Assembly (NCBI GenBank): GCA_000708835.1
Contig: DF237327.1
Span: 1-64,000 of the forward strand
Source of the DNA: Klebsormidium nitens
Lineage: Eukaryota > Plantae > Klebsormidiophyceae
Reading direction: 5' to 3'
DNA length: 64,000 bases
The notes beneath the pieces are model-generated. The model did no database searches. It was not told the origin of the DNA and was given only the letters and a program-made list of their open reading frames with translations. The position numbers were made by a program, and so were the translations under genes. The first letter of the stretch is position 1, and every line of letters begins with the position of its first letter. Positions 31,731-41,229 of the stretch are shown here, in pieces.

Positions 31731-33167
31731 TTAGGCTAGCTTTACATTTGATACTGAGCAGCTCTTGCTGAGAAGCTGCCGTGTGCTGGGGTCGATGCTC
31801 AAAGTGCACTTCAGGGTACCCTGCAGCAGTTGGACAAGGAGATGTGTCAGCCACAACTTTGACACTTCAATGATTGCGCTCGAAACCAGTACTTTGTTAG
31901 AGCTTAGACTCTTGCTTTATATGCACAGCGGCTCTTATGGTCCTGTATGCAACAGAGCTATGACACTACAACACTCATCTGGACTTGTATCTGTACATAA
32001 AACGTGAGGTTGCTCACTTGGCATAGTGCTTATTCCCAGTGACCAACACCAGCAGGTAATGGAGAGCGAATGTGAAAAGTCCACTGCATTGACAGGAGTT
32101 TTACGAGAGGCCCATCTTTTGTGGGGTCCTACAGGACCCCGTACGATGTAACTGGGCCAGTGCCTTATGCTCTTGTGCGTATGAGATCTTTCAACTAGAG
32201 ACCAATCCGGAGATAGAGACCAATCAACCTTGAAGGGGCGTCACTCACCTGGAAAGGGGGTGAGGTGATGCCCCAGATCTTCACGTTCCCCTTGATAACA
32301 CTGTTGGTTGCTAGCGGCACTGAACCGTTGTTGTACGCTGCAAATAAAGTTGATGGAAAGGTAAACATCCAGCCAAAACCTACATTCATTTGTTGCTTCC
32401 ATATTGTCACCTCAAAAGCACTACAGAAGCTGGGATGCAAGCACCTCAATCATGCTTGTGGCCAATTGATGGGGAGCTGCGGTGCTGGCTTCTGGATCTG
32501 GGAGTGGGGAAATCACGCAGAACAGCCATGCTAGCTTAGATGGAGCTAGCTAGGTGACAAACAACGAGTCACCTTCTGGTGCAATAACAAGAATCTGGAA
32601 GGTGCAACAAGACCAAGAGCCAGGAGTTTTACCTGCCAAGAAGTTGCTGGACTCGCTCAGTAGATCCACGTTGGCTATGGAGGCGCTTATGGTCACATTC
32701 TTCTCTGAGTTCTTGCCTTGTGTAAATGCGGGGATGAACGCTTGGCCGATCTGTCTTGTTTGGAAGAAGAGGTCTACTGTGCTATTCTTCACGTTGATCT
32801 CTAGCCGATTGGGGTTCTTAGTGAGCAGATTGAGAGCTAAGCTTGAGGTCAGGAAGAGCGTGGCATTCCCGTCTGTGCTACTGTTTCCTTGCGCTACTGA
32901 GAAATCTTGCACTGAGGCGCTGGTTATGCTGTACGATGGGGACTTTGGCTTCAACACAAGGTAGCCGACAAGTGCTAAGATGCCGAGAGCTAGGATGATG
33001 AGAAAGAGAAGGATGCAGAGAGAACAACACAAGCCTCTACAGGAGCACCACCCCCTCTTCTCCCTCTTGTATTGGCGCACAGCAGGATTTGGAAGGCCGT
33101 CGTCATGGAACTTGCTGTTAGGCCCATAGGTCCCTTGGTTCCCATTGGAAACATAGGCGCCATTCAT
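31731..33167 (-). CDS. NDR1/HIN1-like (NHL) / LEA_2 domain membrane protein
   Basis: Exons 33167-32633, 32337-32249 and 31820-31731. Cys-rich CSCRGLCCSLC, then a TM helix, LKPKSPSYSITSASV, KNPNRLEINVKNSTVDLFF, GQAFIPAFTQG and C-terminal LKCTLSID...SKSC, the typical NHL/LEA_2 layout. Confidence 0.88.
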
Positions 33168-33199
33168 GATGGCTTCGGGGCTGGAGTCACTGCACAAAA

Positions 33200-34830
33200 C
33201 CCGCCTCGTAAGCAGAAAAGCAGCTAGACCTGTGGCAGAGGGAAAGGAACGTTGCGCTTTGGCAGATTGAACTGTATTCTAGATGCTCAGGTTCACGGGG
33301 AATGAACCTCAACTTTGAAAGAAGAGCTTTTTAAAGGCAGACTCCAAAATCTGGTGCTGAAGCCACCTCTGTTCAAGCCGTTTGCCTTGCTCGCCTCGAC
33401 TTTTACGTCTCAAAGCTTGGGCTTTCCCTCAACTTTCCCTAAGCTGTAGGAGACCGCTCTTGATCTGGAGTCCTCCCCCAGATTTGCTGAAGTACTAGCT
33501 CAAAGAACCTGGGAGCCTTGGTAATATCACCTGGGAGGAGGTCTGCCCCAGACATATGCAGGTGTTCCTGCACACTCCCTTCAGATTCGCACAGGGCGCA
33601 TCTTGCAGTAAAGTGCACAGCAGTTTCCTGTTGAAGCAGGAGACATTTTTTGGGAGAAGGGGAGCAGCCGTGCAGAATTCAAGCAGCCGCCACTTGTCAC
33701 TCGGGATCCCCCAGAAATTCTTTGGTCAAACCTGGGTACTTTTGCGCTTGTGCTCGGGGGAAAACCACCGGGTTAATTCTTGGCGGTGGTACCGGTAAAA
33801 CGCAAGCAAGTGACCAGGAAAAGCTCCACCAGCATCGCGTTGACCGTGGAACCAGACGTACGGGTTTTTCGCGGGGCCTGGGCAGTGCCAGTGGGGCCTA
33901 GAGGCTAGAACTTAGGTAGTGTTGTCATAAGCTTAGGTTGTGTTGTCATACCGGTAGGTACTTATTATTCATCAAGGCCCTGACTCAGACTCAAGAGTCA
34001 GAGTCCAGTCTGGACTCTAGAGTACCGTACCTAGACTTGACTTAGCTAAGTGACGGACCAGGACGGTACTGTTCTGTGGCTGTGCTCTAGCTATTCAGGT
34101 TCAGGTTCAGGTTTTCCAATAATGCAAGCATCATCGTGCGGTTGATTCTACCTGGTAGCTTAGCAGGGCTGCTGCAAGCGCCGTGCTTGGGCGAGCCAAC
34201 AGAGAAGGGTGGAAGAATACAGTTCCTGTATGCGCACGTGCCTCAGACTCCTCCCAGCTGGTGGGACAGGCAAGGTGAGTTGCAGCATAAGGACCTCACT
34301 TGCCGCTCTTACAGTATGTTGTGCCCCTGGCGTTTGCTAATAATGGACCGGAATGTCACATCTTTAAGCAGCTGCTTGCTGATGAAGAACTTGTGACCAT
34401 TTCACACCTTTGCAGGCCAATAGCTCCAAGCTTCTAGTATGCACTTGTCTTTGCGATTCCAGATGGCGCCTCCCTATGGTACAGCAGCAAGGGAGCTCTC
34501 ATGATCCTGCATAAATCCCATTCTGTAGAGTTATACCTGCACAGCATACAAGAAGCACCTCTGATCATGCCTTGCACTTCGACGCTTCTGCAAAGCATCC
34601 TCTGCCAGTCCTGACTGTGAATCTTTGGACTTGCAGGATCCAAGACTCCGCTGATTGGGGGTCACCGCATTGATAGGATATTGCGGGCAGCAATGCTGAT
34701 GGCCTTTCGTCATTCAGCAGGTCTGCCCTAGCTCTCAACCTCAGACATTGGATTCCGCTGATTAAGCGATGCTAGGGCCTCCGTAGGGCCTGTTTCTCTG
34801 GCCATTCCAATCCCTCAATCGCGTCCCCAG
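33200..34830. promoter_or_regulatory. Divergent (head-to-head) promoter/5' UTR region of the NHL gene and the NLR-like gene, with a hairpin cluster at 33980-34070
   Basis: Lies between oppositely oriented start codons (33167 minus, 34833 plus). Contains three adjacent inverted repeats and TGACTCA, TTGACT and GTAC motifs. Function is inferred from position only. Confidence 0.4.
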
Positions 34831-34832
34831 TC

Positions 34833-37800
34833 ATGGCAACCAGGCAGGGGGAGGCGTCCGTCAGCAATGAAGACGGAACTGCTGTGTCCGAAACCCCCTT
34901 GGACGCATTGGGGAAGGCAGAAGCTGCAGCCGACGCAGCCGCATTTGTTGCAGGCAAGCTGGAGGATCTCCGGAAGGCAGTGGAAAACAACAAGGACTCC
35001 TTTGACAAGGCATTTGCCAGTGCGTTGACGGGGGTGCTGAATGGCCTGACCGCGGTGCCCTATGTTGGGATTGTAGCGCAGATGGCCAAGTCGGTGCTGG
35101 AGCACGTTCACAACCACTCGGCCGTGCCTAGGAAATTGGCAAAAATGCTTAGGTGGTTCCAGGAGCAGGATTTGGACAGGGTCCTTGGGAGCGTGCCGCA
35201 AGGAGCGGCCTCGCTGCTAGAGTTGAAGAAGACCATGGTGGAGGCAGATCTAATCGCACAGACGATCAAAGGGAAGGGCTGGGGCAACCGCTTCTTCCTT
35301 GCGGCGCCCTATGAGGCGGAGCTGAAGGGAAAGCTGGGCAGTTTGAAGGAGGTGAGGGCCAACTTTCCGCTGGAAGCGACCTGTGACAATGTTGAAATGT
35401 TAATTTCGGTACTAGCGCTTTTGCAGTCAAGCAGACCGGAAGCAACCGCAGCCAAGCACAATGTGCCGGAGGTGGGCCCTTTTTTTGTGGGGCGGGAGGA
35501 GGTCCTTAAGGAGATGTCCGACGCGCTGTGGGGGGGTGCAGAGACCAGCGCAGGCTCCCGTATAATTGTGTGCCTCTGGGGGATCGAGGGCATTGGGAAG
35601 ACAGAGCTGGCGTGCAAGTACTCCCACGAAAATCTGAGCCGGTACGGGAAGGTGCTGTGGGTCGACGTCCAACGCAAAGGGGCGCAGGGGGGCTACGCGG
35701 CTTCAGGGGGGGATGTCTTGGGGTTGACCCAAGGTCCCGGCGAGCAACTAGAGGACTACGTGAAGCGGGTCAGGCTGACGCTGGAGAATCAAACGGAGCC
35801 TTTCCTTCTGGTTTTTGACGGGGCTGGTGGGGAAACCCTGTCGGAGCTGCAGGCGTTGTTGCCAGGAGAGCGCCAGGCGTGCCACGTGCTCGTCACGACT
35901 GCGGACGATCTGGCTCTGCGGCAACATGGGGCGGTGCCAGTGGCTGTAGAAAGTCTTGGTAGGGACGAGGCGCAGGCGCTGCTGAAACGGGAGCTGATTA
36001 TGGAGAGCGCATCGCGGAGTGGGGAAATCCTCGATGAAGTGGCAAAGCGGCTGGGGTATCTTACGATTGCTTTGACAGGAGCGGCTTCTTTGCTGGAACG
36101 GCGCTTGTTCGAGCGCAATCCGTTCGAAAAGTTTCTAGCAGAGGTGGGCGAGCTTGGAGGTGTGGGGCCGGCGAACAGAGTGTTGGGGCTCAATCTTCGC
36201 TTCCTGGAAAGAGGAATTCCCCTCGGGCCCAACATTGTGGTGCTCCAGTTTGCCTTTTACATTGCCATGGTATCCGGGTGGTTTGGGGAAGGGCCTGTTC
36301 GCATCGAGCCTTTGCTGGAAGCAGCAAAAAGGTAAAGTGTCAAGACAGCGCCTTGCAAGTCTGCTTCGGATCAGATGAAGTGTGAATGAAAATGCATAGG
36401 CATCTGCATGTCGAATAGTTGCCGACATCGTTTGCCTTGCAAGCAGGGTACTTGACGGGGAAAGCTTTTTCAGTTGAGATACCAACTCGAGAACCACAGT
36501 GACAGTTGCCTTGTTAACATGGATGGGAGCCCAGAAGATGCGTTTTCAAACCTGTTTTGCTTGACAAGTACAGGGTGATTAGAGATCTAGATATGCAGAT
36601 TTCCTGTCCCCATAGCCTGAGGTGGGACAACTGAGTTCAAAAAAGATTCTTTCCTTCTCCCAAGAGCACCTGCTCACAACAATCATGATATGTCACTTCC
36701 CGCTTGTGATGTTTCAAAGACGGCCTTTTATATTGTAGTGCTGTGACAGTAATAAGCCAGCCATAGTCGGAGCCTCGGACTCTGATTTTCCTACTTACAC
36801 AAAGAGACAAATAGCAATGCGTTTTGCAGGCTGGTTGCGGCAGTCCGCGCAGAGACGGAAGCGAGTGACGACGAAGCAAACATTGAGTTGGACATGATCT
36901 ACCATTCTCTGCCCACTCAACGAACAGCAGAGGCTGAAGAAGGTGCTGAACAAAGTAGGTCGCACCTCGTTTACACCATGGTCAATCATTTGCTAAGAGA
37001 GTGACCACACAAACCACTAGCCGAACACAAAGCGGCTTTGCAACTGGGCAACTTCGATCAGTTTTGGGTCTCGGATTACAATCTTCACCTCTTTACATCC
37101 AACGAATGCGACTCTTGGTGACAATCTGTACTGTGCGCATTCAATGCAGACTTTATTCCAAAATCTGTCACGGAACTTGGTTTGGAAGTGCAGACCGTCC
37201 ATTTGCATCGTTTTAATGATCTAGAGGTCAGAGACTTCTTCGTTTCCCGGTTTTGCCGAAGCCCCCTCCACCCACCTGGCTGCGCTGAACTCTCTCTCTG
37301 AAAAATTACGCACGAACACAGGAGAATGTCAGTCCCAGATTCTCTGCAAACTTTCTTGGGAAGACCATTAGAACAGGACGTAAACAAAGTTCGCCTTGAA
37401 GAGTCCAAAATTGCTTTTCCGTGTTTTGGTGAGAGTCTTAGTGCGAGCCTAGGAATCTAGATTGGCTACTGCTTGCTACTAGATTCACCTGAATACAGTT
37501 GGGGTCTGGCTTTGAAAGAAGCTCCACGAAGTATGTTCGAAGTATTGATGCGCCCCGGCCAATCTCATGGCCAATCAGTTTGGTAAAGAGCTGACACAAG
37601 ATCATGGGTTTCTTTGCAGAAAAGGTTACCAGCTTGACCTTCCACGTGCTCTTTCTTGAGTACGTGAGGCGCCAGGACGGGGTGGACGCGGCCAGAGCGG
37701 CAACTCTGGCTACGGTTGCGGGCATGGAATGCGCCGCGGGAACATTGCAGCAGTTCCGGGGGGTTTGGAACGTGGTGGTCAAGCTTCTGGGCGCCCTCGA

Positions 37801-38793
37801 CCGTTCGGAGTTGGAGAATGCTCGTAGGGTTGGGGCCAAGTACGCAGGATATCTCCTGGGCGATGGTGGCGATTGCAAGACGGCTGAAGCGGTGCTCGAG
37901 AGCGGTCTCGAAACGTTGGGGGAGGGATCGCGGGGTTGGGAGTGGAGGCTTCAACTCGCGCAAGCCCTGAACCGATCCGGGGGTTACGCTCGTGCCGCGG
38001 AGATTGCCGAGGGTGTGGTCAAGGAAGTTGAGGACACAGATGCAGCTCCCCCAGCTCCCCCAGCTCCCCCTATCGAAAGAAAGCGGAAGCAGAATACCAA
38101 GCGGTGGCTCTGTTGCTTTGGACGGCAAGATGGGGGTCCGGGTCCAGAAGTCGATGGCGGGCTTGACTTGGTCAACACTGGTCTGGTTCGGGCACGAGCG
38201 TGGCAGGTGCAAGCAACTATCCATGAAAGTTAAGGGAGGCATGCAGAAGCGCTTCAGCTCCTCGGGCAAAGCCTGCTTGCCACGGAGAAGGCCCTAGGGC
38301 CGGACCACCTCGACGTGGCCCCCGCGCTGAAAAGCATGGCGGCCGTGCTCCAGAGCCAAGGCAAGTTGGACGAGGCGCTGCCGCTGCTCCAGCGGGCGCT
38401 TCGCATAGATGAGACGGCTCGGGGACCGGACGACCCCCACGTGGCTATCACGCTGCACAGCCTTGCGGCCCTACTCGGCGACCAAGGCAAGTACGAGGAG
38501 GCCCTTGCGCTGTACGAGAGGGCGCTCGCAACCCGGGAGAGGGCCCTGGATTTGGATCACCCCACGTGGCTGTCACGCTGAATAGCATGGGGGCCCTCGT
38601 TTGTAAGAAAGGCAGGGACGAAGAGGCGGTGCCGCTCTTCAAGAGGGCGCTTGGGATCCGGGAGAAGGCGCTCGGCCCCGCACATCCCGACACGAATACC
38701 CTAAGGTCTGACTTGGAGGACGCGGAGCGGAAGGTGCGTCACCCGTTTGTTTTTACTTCCTACATTCTGATCAATTTTGGATGCACCCGCTGA
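34833..38793 (+). CDS. NLR-like STAND NTPase: putative four-helix-bundle N-terminus, NB-ARC (TNP-like) and 42-aa TPR repeats; disrupted in the TPR region (possible pseudogene or truncated allele)
   Basis: Exon 1 (34833-36331): FVGREEVL, Walker A GIEGIGKTELA, Walker B FLLVFDG, HVLVTT, LGYLTIAL, MVSGWFGEGP. Exon 2 (36830-36954) and exon 3 (from 37620) are phase-compatible (LTFHVLFLEYVRR). TPR units GPDHLDVA, GPDDPHVA, DLDHP, GPAHPDT. In-frame TAA at 38231-38233 and a 1-bp deletion near 38564. Confidence 0.85.
38231..38732 (+). repeat. Coding tandem TPR repeats (kinesin-light-chain-like, 126-nt period)
   Basis: The G-P-D-H-P-like motif starts at 38297, 38423, 38549 and 38674 (spacings 126, 126, 125 nt). 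Confidence 0.9.
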
Positions 38794-41229
38794 TGGTACG
38801 ACTATTCGAAGGATTGGACTTCAGCTTTGACTGCTTTTGGCCTTCTCACTGTTTTGAGAAGAAAGAGGGCGAGGTACTCATTGGAAGCAAGCAGGGGGCA
38901 GCCCTTGTCTGCTGCGCCGTGGGGACGCTTCAGCGGTACCCGAATCCGAATCCTGCTAAGAAGCTTGCGACCAACTTTCGAGCAGACTGCGTAAATTCCC
39001 GATTATGTCTCTCTACCTCGAGGATCGGGTTTGCATGCTCAGTAGTGTTCGCGCCAAAAGGAGTGGTTGCTGGCCAGGTTCGTCAACCCAACCTCGAATT
39101 TGTATTCTGCAAGGCGGCGTTCACGGTCCCGATTGTTGTTTGAGGCTCAGATGCCGTCACATCACCATTAGCTTGAACAGCCGCCTTCCGCTAAACAAGC
39201 CACGTTCGCCTCGATTTCGTTGTTGGGTTCAAAGCTCGGATCAGTTTCTGTTTGATGGTGGGTCATTGCTTGCAAGCTCGCTAATCGTTTTCAGAATCCA
39301 ACTTTTCTCAACGAACGGTTTCAACTTCCATATAAAGACCGGCCGAGCACTTGCGTCAGGCGTCATTGAGCTCCCCGCTGATTTCGGCCCTTCTCCGAGT
39401 CGAAGAATGTTCGCATGGTCCGCTTTCAAACCTTTCCTGATACGGTGCCCCACTGAGTGGATATTCCCTGTGACTGCAGGTGGCTCAGATGGCATTGCGC
39501 ACGGACCAGGGGATGGGCTCGTCGGTCGGCGAAGATACTGCGGAGAGCCGCAGTTCGGGAGCTCAGGGAACGGTCAAGTAGTAAGAGCAATCTTTGAGAG
39601 ATCATTGAGAGGGCCTCTCATGCCTGGAGCTGTGTAGTAGAGTTCTAGACAGGAAGCCTGTGTTAGCCTTTGCGTACAGACAACCGAAACTTATCCAACT
39701 TGTTGTGGAATCGCATCGATCGTGTCCGAGGTTGATAGATGGATAGGACTCGTGTTGAGCCTTGAGAAACAATAAAGGGTGGTGCAAAATGGAACTTGCA
39801 TGGCAGAACGATCCGACCAATCTACCATTCTGACTATGAAAGGGCGCCACATGCATATCCAGATCGTTCGTGGACATTCCCGTTCAACTTGGACACCTAC
39901 AGAAGAACCCCATAATTTGTGATATTGTCGATCTCGATCAACTAGAGATCAGGATCGCACTGTGACGGCAACTGAAGCGCCGTGGGCCTCAACCGTGCTG
40001 CCATGTGTACGTCAACAAGCATATCATGCATATAGGCCTGCTTCGCAATCAATCCTAGGCTCGGGCTAGCTATACTATCGGCCGGATGCAAATGATACAT
40101 GTTGCTGCATACATAGTATTTGATCCATGACGGTCACTCAGTGTGCATGAAGGGGGCGGCCGTCCCGAGTCCTTGTTAATATAAGGATCCAGCGTTGCAG
40201 TGACATGGGCCCCGGGGGCCCGCGCGTCGTCCGGGCCCGGCCATGATCACGTCTTGCCCTTTTCGAAGGCATCATCGAGGATGCATTAGAGCCCGACTTT
40301 GACGGTTGAAATATCACGATCTAGATCCGCACATGCATACGTGATGCACATATTCGATCAGCAGCATGGCAGCCTGAACTGCCGGGACGGATATGGCGGC
40401 AGTCCGGTCTTACAAGCTGCTGCTTGCGCCTTGATAGCTGCAATAATGAGCATAGACCATTAAATGACTGGCACTATGAACAAGTTTTCGCAAAGACGCA
40501 ACCTGTATCACGGATAATCCAACATCGAGGTTTGAGCAAGAGAACTTTGGATCCACAACGATCTGCTCAGACTTTAAACCCACAACGATGTTAACAAGTC
40601 TTCCTCCGGCTTCTGCTTATGAATCAGTCCCGCTTGAACAAGAACGCCTGAAATCACCGGCGTCGTCCTCGTTATGTTGCTTTCGCATTGCTTTGAGTAG
40701 GTTGCGAATCAAAACTTCCAGCGGACAGGTTCTATGTTTATGGTGTTAGTGCTGGGGTATATCCGTGACGGCGTTCCATTTGTGCGAGACGGTGTCTCGT
40801 TCGAAGGCCTCCGCCGCACCAAGGCTTCAGTAGGCTGCAAGGCACCCATCTTCCGCATCAGACAACCCGATTGAATGTGATTTTGACAGAAACCGCAGAA
40901 AGAGAGTTGATTCCGTCGTAGAGGGCTGTCCTTGTGGATGCAAGGTCAAAGTGTGTCAGGATATCATCCGAGTCAAACAAGGAAGAGACCACTGCGTTCT
41001 CAAACTTTCAGCCAACTCGTGATGGGCGATATTCTTCTGGCTGCCGGGCACTGTGTGCGCTTGGCGCAGTGTCGCCTCCAAATCCAAATGGGCATCAGAC
41101 GGGTGAGAAATTTTGCACATGATGTTGAACAACTACCATGTCCCAATCTTGTCGCCGAACGAAGGGTCTTCTTGAGCACCCAATGTGCTCAGGGAAGAAA
41201 ACCACTGTGCTGAGATTGCTCCGGACTTA

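Follow-up and report, generated by a model that had tools for sequence, protein, structure and literature searches.

Receptor-like proteins in which an NB-ARC domain is followed by TPR repeats have been described from several lineages. In fungi, N-termini of the helical death-domain type are frequently found on NOD-TPR bodies, and TPRs are the preferred partner downstream of NB-ARC (Dyrka et al. 2014, PMC4986451). The TIR-NB-ARC-TPR proteins (TNPs) of plants have NB-ARC domains resembling those of bacterial and fungal NB-TPR proteins, and reciprocal BLAST revealed no TNP orthologue in Klebsormidium nitens or Chara (Johanndrees et al. 2022, PMC9806590). Seven NB-encoding genes were reported for K. 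flaccidum/nitens (Andolfo et al. 2019, Genome Biol Evol, PMC7145615), three of which (kfl00078_0280, kfl01104_0010 and kfl00378_0070) form a 'clade I NB-TPR', whose NB domains are devoid of typical R-protein signatures and carry the clade-specific motifs IVCLWGIRGI, YCHENLSRYG, SIAMVAGWFG, LTFHDLFLEY and TVQQFKGVWD (Supplementary Table 4 therein); the best BLAST match of the kfl00378_0070 NB region was a bacterial TIR-NB-TPR protein (1e-10). A 2023 review (PMC10952240) mentions, in general terms, NLR-like receptors of K. nitens that are truncated or have alternative repeats and carry TIRs or CC/RPW8-like bundles. Here, we analysed the gene kfl00378_0070 (KFL_003780070), which is located on the forward strand of a 64,000-nucleotide (nt) stretch of the K. 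nitens contig DF237327.1 (positions 1 to 64,000; the window) and encodes a product of 745 amino acids (aa; P0001) with the public label 'NB-ARC domain-containing protein'.

The explanation we favour, with moderate confidence, is that KFL_003780070 belongs with two paralogues to a family of NLR-like STAND NTPases that is restricted to Klebsormidium, and represents a decaying copy that has lost its TPR sensor, its N-terminus being likeliest a divergent MLKL_N/RPW8/HeLo-like domain. As encoded, the window copy consists of an N-terminal domain, an NB-ARC domain and degenerate helices and has no canonical TPR array. The N-terminal domain is a previously unannotated domain on a catalogued, lineage-specific NLR-like family. 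From the sequence comparisons given below, the ancestral layout would have comprised an all-helical N-terminal domain of ~145 aa (with 68 additional aa in front of it in K. nitens), an NB-ARC switch in which P-loop and Walker B were intact, and a C-terminal TPR_10/12 array.

The 500-aa open reading frame (ORF) at 34833-36335 (+) was 100% identical to residues 1-500 of P0001, and joining of the three coding segments by script yielded the exact P0001 sequence. Logan contigs from four runs, each of a different study, were mapped on positions 34300-39300, with 0 base differences and 0 indels. Since these contigs are spliced, they are RNA-derived, and it follows that KFL_003780070 is transcribed and correctly spliced; contig depth is no measure of expression level.

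The loss of the TPR array was traced to two lesions. A TAA codon at 38231-38233, in the frame of the coding sequence (CDS), interrupts the first canonical TPR unit (IHES*GRHAEAL, compared with NRQGRRAEAL in the paralogue kfl00078_0280), the position of the stop being occupied by Q in the paralogue. Downstream of it, TPR_10/TPR_12 repeats are found at 38234-38733, where the segment up to 38563 is 58-59% identical to the TPRs of kfl00078_0280 (BLASTP E 1e-39), a 1-nt deletion at ~38563 shifts the frame of the last TPR, and the segment from 38566 onwards shares 68% identity with the C-terminal TPR of the paralogue (BLASTP E 2e-23). Both the TAA and the deletion were unchanged in the RNA contigs of the four studies. 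A tiny intron excising the TAA was considered and ruled out, as the RNA contigs were colinear with the genome over 37620-38736. In P0001 itself, aa 420-745 gave no significant Pfam match, and the coding part of exon 3 showed only weak TPR_14 and TPR_16 signals. Thus, TPRs, which the earlier note had counted as part of the encoded protein, lie behind the stop and the frameshift, and these two lesions account for the 'NB'-only assignment in the public annotation and in the 2019 catalogue. The latter lists neither an N-terminal domain nor a TPR for kfl00378_0070 and makes no mention of its stop or frameshift, nor of a stop in the N-terminal domain of kfl00078_0280 (see below). Segments flanking the stop and the frameshift served as separate queries; by our own arithmetic, we infer a length of ~946 aa for an ancestral protein with open frames.

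For the NB-ARC domain, the earlier assignment was borne out: Pfam PF00931 matched aa 230-406 with 39.3 bits (cutoff 23.5, E 5.6e-10). The corresponding domain of kfl00078_0280 scored 26.0 bits in Pfam, which is above the same cutoff. The best profile match of the NB-ARC and TPR parts was the bacterial NB-ARC-TPR model FxSxx_TPR (NCBIfam NF040586), representing the TPR protein of the actinobacterial FxSxx-COOH system, with 101 bits over aa 213-424 of P0001 and 232 bits for the paralogue. The K. nitens proteins differ from that family in that both score under its cutoff of 300 bits, in being encoded by a eukaryotic gene with spliceosomal introns, and in having another N-terminal domain. A search with aa 75-420 of the intact NB-ARC region of kfl00078_0280 gave weak matches only, to bacterial and metagenomic NB-ARC-TPR proteins, a Micromonospora protein being among the nearest; identity to the best non-Klebsormidium matches was ~27-33%, and no plant TNP was among the matches. 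A phmmer search of the NB-ARC region against PDB sequences gave no match, and PADLOC returned nothing meaningful. The five published clade I motifs of kfl00378_0070 are given at aa 245-254, 263-272, 476-485, 547-556 and 583-592, which is consistent with the P0001 coordinates.

The ~212 aa directly upstream of the NB-ARC domain were predicted to be all-helical (DSSP on both AlphaFold2 (AF2) models), in agreement with the helical, non-TIR N-terminus that the earlier note had read from this region. The strings it had singled out are both located there, VPYVGIVAQMAKSVLEHV at aa 75-92 and KGKGWGNRFF at aa 146-155. The absence of a TIR was likewise supported. No Pfam or NCBIfam TIR match was obtained, and an upstream coding (TIR) exon was ruled out: with an untranslated 5' exon and in-frame stops in the leader (34637-34832) preceding the start codon at 34833, a TIR exon located upstream cannot be fused.

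Within the N-terminal region, the core domain contains five predicted helices (~aa 74-93, 100-111, 122-146, 150-177 and 181-199), of which the first is moderately hydrophobic (Kyte-Doolittle (KD19) maximum 1.53 at aa 73) and reveals no clear transmembrane segment. When aa 1-210 were compared exhaustively with 1.84 billion representative proteins by phmmer, the only matches were P0001 itself, the paralogue kfl00078_0280 (P0002) and a 325-aa protein from the Logan SRR23617307 assembly (P0003; ORF at 6001-6978 of contig L002). The last is ~32-33% identical to the window protein over aa 70-210 and starts at the hydrophobic helix matching window aa ~69. Word-index searches with the exon 1 protein region 1-215 and with a profile of the three homologues yielded no further N-terminal relatives.

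Two lines of evidence suggest that this domain may be a very divergent member of the MLKL_N/RPW8/HeLo-like helical bundles, a judgement in which we consider the chances evenly balanced. The top Pfam match of P0003 was MLKL_N (PF22215), with E 0.013-0.015 and 15.3-15.5 bits against a cutoff of 27; the alignment pairs aa 63-119 with model positions 55-111, a register that places the model start at the protein N-terminus. As the families named in advance amounted to ~10 among 24,736 Pfam models, this top rank is unlikely to be pure chance. By ESM-Atlas features, an MLKL_N cluster ranked second for the window N-terminus (0.87, 190/256 features shared), between two unannotated fungal clusters, and MLKL_N, MCAfunc, RPW8 and SesA clusters were found for the P0003 N-terminus, 8/10 belonging to the same clan; the neighbour scores were 0.77-0.89, where the threshold for a lead is 0.9.

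Several observations weigh against such a relationship. Neither the window protein nor its K. nitens paralogue gave a Pfam bundle match up to E 10. The MLKL_N score of P0003 is far under the cutoff and only ~5-10x better than the noise in the same tables, and all ESM scores remained below 0.9. For the window protein, the K. nitens paralogue and P0003, no above-threshold match to PF22215, PF05659, PF14479, PF17111 or PF17107 was obtained. Profile searches against PDB sequences with the N-terminal domain were empty. The AF2 models of aa 1-210 and of aa 69-212 with the three-homologue alignment were of low confidence (predicted local distance difference test (pLDDT) 49 and 52, predicted template modelling score (pTM) 0.29 and 0.43). 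Finally, an extension of 68 aa before the putative first helix is unusual among the known executioner bundles. With the window N-terminus as query, whole or in sub-ranges, Pfam, NCBIfam and PDB sequences yielded nothing or noise (IMPDH, CD180, FAP360) up to E 10. Foldseek against PDB, the ESM-Atlas shape search and VIA-wide on the AF2 models returned generic helical bundles only; low-confidence models and generic fold matches of this kind are evidence neither for nor against a fold. In terms of described bundles, the K. nitens domain shares with MLKL_N (PF22215), RPW8 (PF05659) and the plant CC_R bundles an all-helical content and a size of ~140 aa, and differs from them by the 68 extra aa in front, the lack of a Pfam match and the lack of a confident four-helix model. 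The MLKL four-helix bundle of the earlier note is thus retained in part: the sub-threshold MLKL_N match on P0003 and the ESM neighbours point towards it, whereas the window protein itself provides neither a Pfam match nor a confident bundle. Modelling followed by Foldseek, as the note had suggested, upheld the helical content without specifying the fold. The Cbl-N likeness that was also proposed found no link in any search.

A lesser but considerable probability attaches to the N-terminal region being an orphan helical domain unrelated to MLKL, RPW8, HeLo or CC domains, for instance a regulatory lid or a three-helix bundle serving as adaptor or in oligomerisation, in which case the MLKL_N signals would reflect a generic likeness of amphipathic helices. 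The restriction of the domain to three family members among the 1.84 billion representatives and the missing Pfam match of the window protein are in line with this, as is the structural modelling, where AF2 built no four-helix bundle and the better-modelled aa 121-212 matched generic three-helix bundles. How readily short helices are matched is illustrated by P0003, for which TAL-effector matches in PDB (E 2e-5) were rejected as spurious, since they concerned one 23-aa stretch with ~2 bits per repeat, summed over tandem repeats. On the other hand, two different methods applied to two ~32% identical sequences point to one superfamily, the Pfam register puts the start of the domain at the protein N-terminus, as is expected of such bundles, and helical N-termini of eukaryotic NLR-like proteins mostly belong to this superfamily (PMC4986451, PMC10952240).

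If the divergent MLKL_N/RPW8/HeLo-like domain is accepted as an output module, the ancestral protein may have worked as follows. Taking NLR, Avs and fungal NB-ARC-TPR proteins as a guide, one would expect the TPR array to keep the protein off and to bind a ligand; nucleotide exchange in the NB-ARC domain would then drive oligomerisation, which would cluster the N-terminal domains, and the hydrophobic first helix of the output module might act on membranes. In the window, the gene most likely represents a recently disabled or sensor-less receptor. The fungal HeLo, HeLo-like/SesA and Goodbye NLRs (PMC4986451) share this tripartite layout of helical effector, NOD and TPR, and SesA and MLKL_N are among the ESM neighbours; they differ in that the K. 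nitens N-terminus has no above-threshold sequence homology to them, in that fungal HeLo-like domains are mostly combined with NACHT, and in that the present family belongs to a streptophyte lineage.

Comparison with the other accessible family members, P0002 and P0003, pointed to damage in both. P0002 is a 924-aa K. nitens protein annotated as 'kinesin light chain', in which the NB-ARC domain and six TPR_12 units are intact. At its locus (contig DF237027.1, L001 5590-6237), a colinear N-terminal domain is present whose DNA is ~89% identical to that of the window copy; inside this domain, the DF237027.1 sequence has a TAA (L001 5920-5922) where the window copy has TGG (Trp), which is why the annotated P0002 starts at an internal Met. 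A 12-nt insertion is located just upstream of this TAA. P0003 has GKG in place of GKT in its P-loop and ends after RNBS-B with no continuation in any frame, and its GC content at third codon positions (GC3) is 0.51 compared with 0.69 in a neighbouring KAP-NTPase ORF; by these sequence features, it is probably a decayed fragment. The neighbouring ORF (L002 7408-10086) encodes an intact 892-aa KAP-family P-loop NTPase and lies 430 nt downstream of the P0003 ORF, on a contig whose GC content (51%) is similar to that of K. nitens. Counting of paralogues resulted in the three K. nitens genes of clade I, to which phmmer added only the P0003 fragment. The three accessible members (P0001, P0002 and P0003; kfl01104_0010 is not among them) are each broken in a different module, which fits the birth-and-death turnover usual for NLR families.

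Pairwise ratios of nonsynonymous to synonymous substitution rates (dN/dS) between the window copy and P0002 were 0.30 for the N-terminal core (aa 69-210) and 0.31 for the NB-ARC domain, with a dS of ~0.5; for the extension (aa 1-68) and exon 3, values of 0.63 and 0.51 were obtained. The ratio of 0.30 implies purifying selection, the N-terminal core having been constrained as a protein domain during most of the period after duplication. The stop codons would then probably be late events, which pairwise dN/dS cannot date.

The same data allow for the window copy being a functional truncated protein that lacks a sensor and has been retained alongside the intact paralogue(s) in the role of helper, decoy or constitutive signalling partner, which we consider unlikely. 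Such a role would be compatible with correct splicing and expression in four independent studies, the intact P-loop and Walker B motifs, the constraint that acted on N-terminus and NB-ARC domain during the greater part of the period after duplication, and the complementary defects of the two K. nitens copies. However, a pairwise dN/dS value is a mean for the entire period of divergence and cannot reveal whether constraint persisted once the stop had appeared, contig depth cannot stand in for expression level, and the TPR remnant is already frameshifted. In addition, the stop is located ~500 nt upstream of the last exon junction and thus exceeds the distance of 50 nt beyond which nonsense-mediated decay (NMD) is predicted, so that the KFL_003780070 mRNA should be an NMD target; this speaks against a function of the window copy.

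Rather improbable, in our estimate, is an independent fusion, in streptophyte algae, of a membrane-attacking bundle of a very divergent MLKL/RPW8-like type with a bacterial/fungal-type NB-ARC-TPR sensor. It would predate the CC_R-NLRs of land plants and form a plant-lineage counterpart of the fungal HeLo-NLRs, and the two broken copies might then act as a split pair. In such a pair, one copy would contribute effector and switch without a sensor and the other switch and sensor without an effector.

That the gene descends from TNP-type receptors by replacement of the TIR with a four-helix-bundle executioner, the outcome being a functional immune receptor with four-helix bundle, NB-ARC and TPRs, is very improbable. 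An NB-ARC domain followed (ancestrally) by TPRs and the resemblance of this domain to bacterial/fungal NB-TPR proteins are shared with plant TNPs (PMC9806590). However, the K. nitens gene has no TIR and no possible upstream TIR exon, is without TNP orthology by reciprocal BLAST, finds no plant TNP among its NB-ARC matches and has its TPRs untranslated, and the 'TNP-like' motifs cited in the earlier note are those published as Klebsormidium clade I-specific (PMC7145615). Nor was support found for the supposition that the family is undescribed, given that both this gene and the NB-TPR clade around it appear in the 2019 catalogue (PMC7145615) and CC/RPW8-like NLR-like proteins of K. nitens are mentioned in the review PMC10952240; a literature search by gene identifier found no paper naming the gene, which is listed in the supplement of PMC7145615.

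The coordinates of all features are compiled in Table 1. The 5' untranslated exon was deduced from contig loose ends preceding 34635 in the four runs (...GGGACAGGCA), which match ~34243-34272; a GT donor is located at 34275, and the leader intron extends up to 34636. The leader in exon 1 also contains two short upstream ORFs (ATG at ~34694 and ~34769). Beyond the annotated stop, a third intron (38734-39480, 747 nt) and a last exon from 39481 were found, this part of the transcript being therefore absent from the public gene model. Judged by its resemblance to the P0002 end (...VRTDQGMGSSV...), the last exon would have coded for the ancestral C-terminal tail.

Table 1. Features of KFL_003780070 and of its untranslated remnants (positions refer to the window)
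Feature	Position	Strand	Basis or remark
5' untranslated exon	34105..34274	+	Start approximate; at least 168 nt supported
Exon 1	34637..36331	+	Contigs 34635-36332, 4 runs, 0 differences; CDS from ATG 34833
N-terminal extension, aa 1-68	34833..35036	+	~22 disordered residues, then Ala-rich helices (AF2); not in P0003 (alignment)
Core helical domain, aa 69-212	35037..35468	+	phmmer to P0003, E 1.4e-6 over aa 70-210; AF2 DSSP
NB-ARC, aa 213-424	35469..36104	+	Pfam NB-ARC and NCBIfam FxSxx_TPR
P-loop GIEGIGKT, aa 250-257	35580-35603	+	Walker A intact
Walker B FLLVFDG, aa 324-330	35802-35822	+	Intact
HVLVTTADD	35883-35909	+	NB-ARC motif
GLPL-like LGYLTIAL	36051-36074	+	Degenerate GLPL
Intron 1	36332..36829	+	498 nt, GT..AG; joint in all 4 runs
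Exon 2, linker from NB-ARC to helical repeats	36830..36954	+	Contig pieces and joints; joined exons equal P0001
Intron 2	36955..37619	+	665 nt, GT..AG; joint in all 4 runs
Exon 3, whole	37620-38733	+	Contig loose end at 38736
Exon 3, coding part	37620..38233	+	MHD-like FHVLFLEYVRR 37640-37672; degenerate TPR-like helices; TAA 38231-38233
TPR_10/TPR_12 repeats, untranslated	38234..38563	+	CDS frame, 3' of stop; TPR_10 E 7.8e-22, TPR_12 E 5.7e-21 (Pfam)
1-nt deletion	38562..38566	+	Run of four C, five C in neighbouring repeat; gap at ~38563 in paralogue DNA alignment
Last TPR and tail	38566..38733	+	+1 frame relative to CDS; TPR_10 E 5.7e-10
Last exon seen, now 3' untranslated region	39481..39735	+	Loose end GCTCAGATGGCATTGCGCACGG matches 39484 onward after CAG acceptor; 3' limit provisional

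On the opposite strand, a 215-aa ORF at 32550-33197 (-), which matches Pfam LEA_2 (E 1.2e-6) and has a single transmembrane stretch, is arranged head-to-head with the NB-ARC gene, ~1 kb from its 5' exon. We take this ORF to be of the NDR1/HIN1-like protein type. NDR1 is required by CC-NLRs in angiosperms. The adjacency of the two genes is curious and may be due to chance.

As it stands, the analysis corrects the record for a catalogued NB-TPR member of K. nitens: a nonsense mutation and a frameshift account for the lack of TPRs in its annotation, the motifs taken for 'TNP' features are specific to its clade, and the orphan N-terminal domain resembles death-fold bundles only faintly. If this domain were a true bundle, four-helix executioners would already have been coupled to NB-ARC and TPR, not LRR, in an early-diverging streptophyte alga, which would bear on the origin of plant CC/CC_R-NLRs and MLKL-like proteins.

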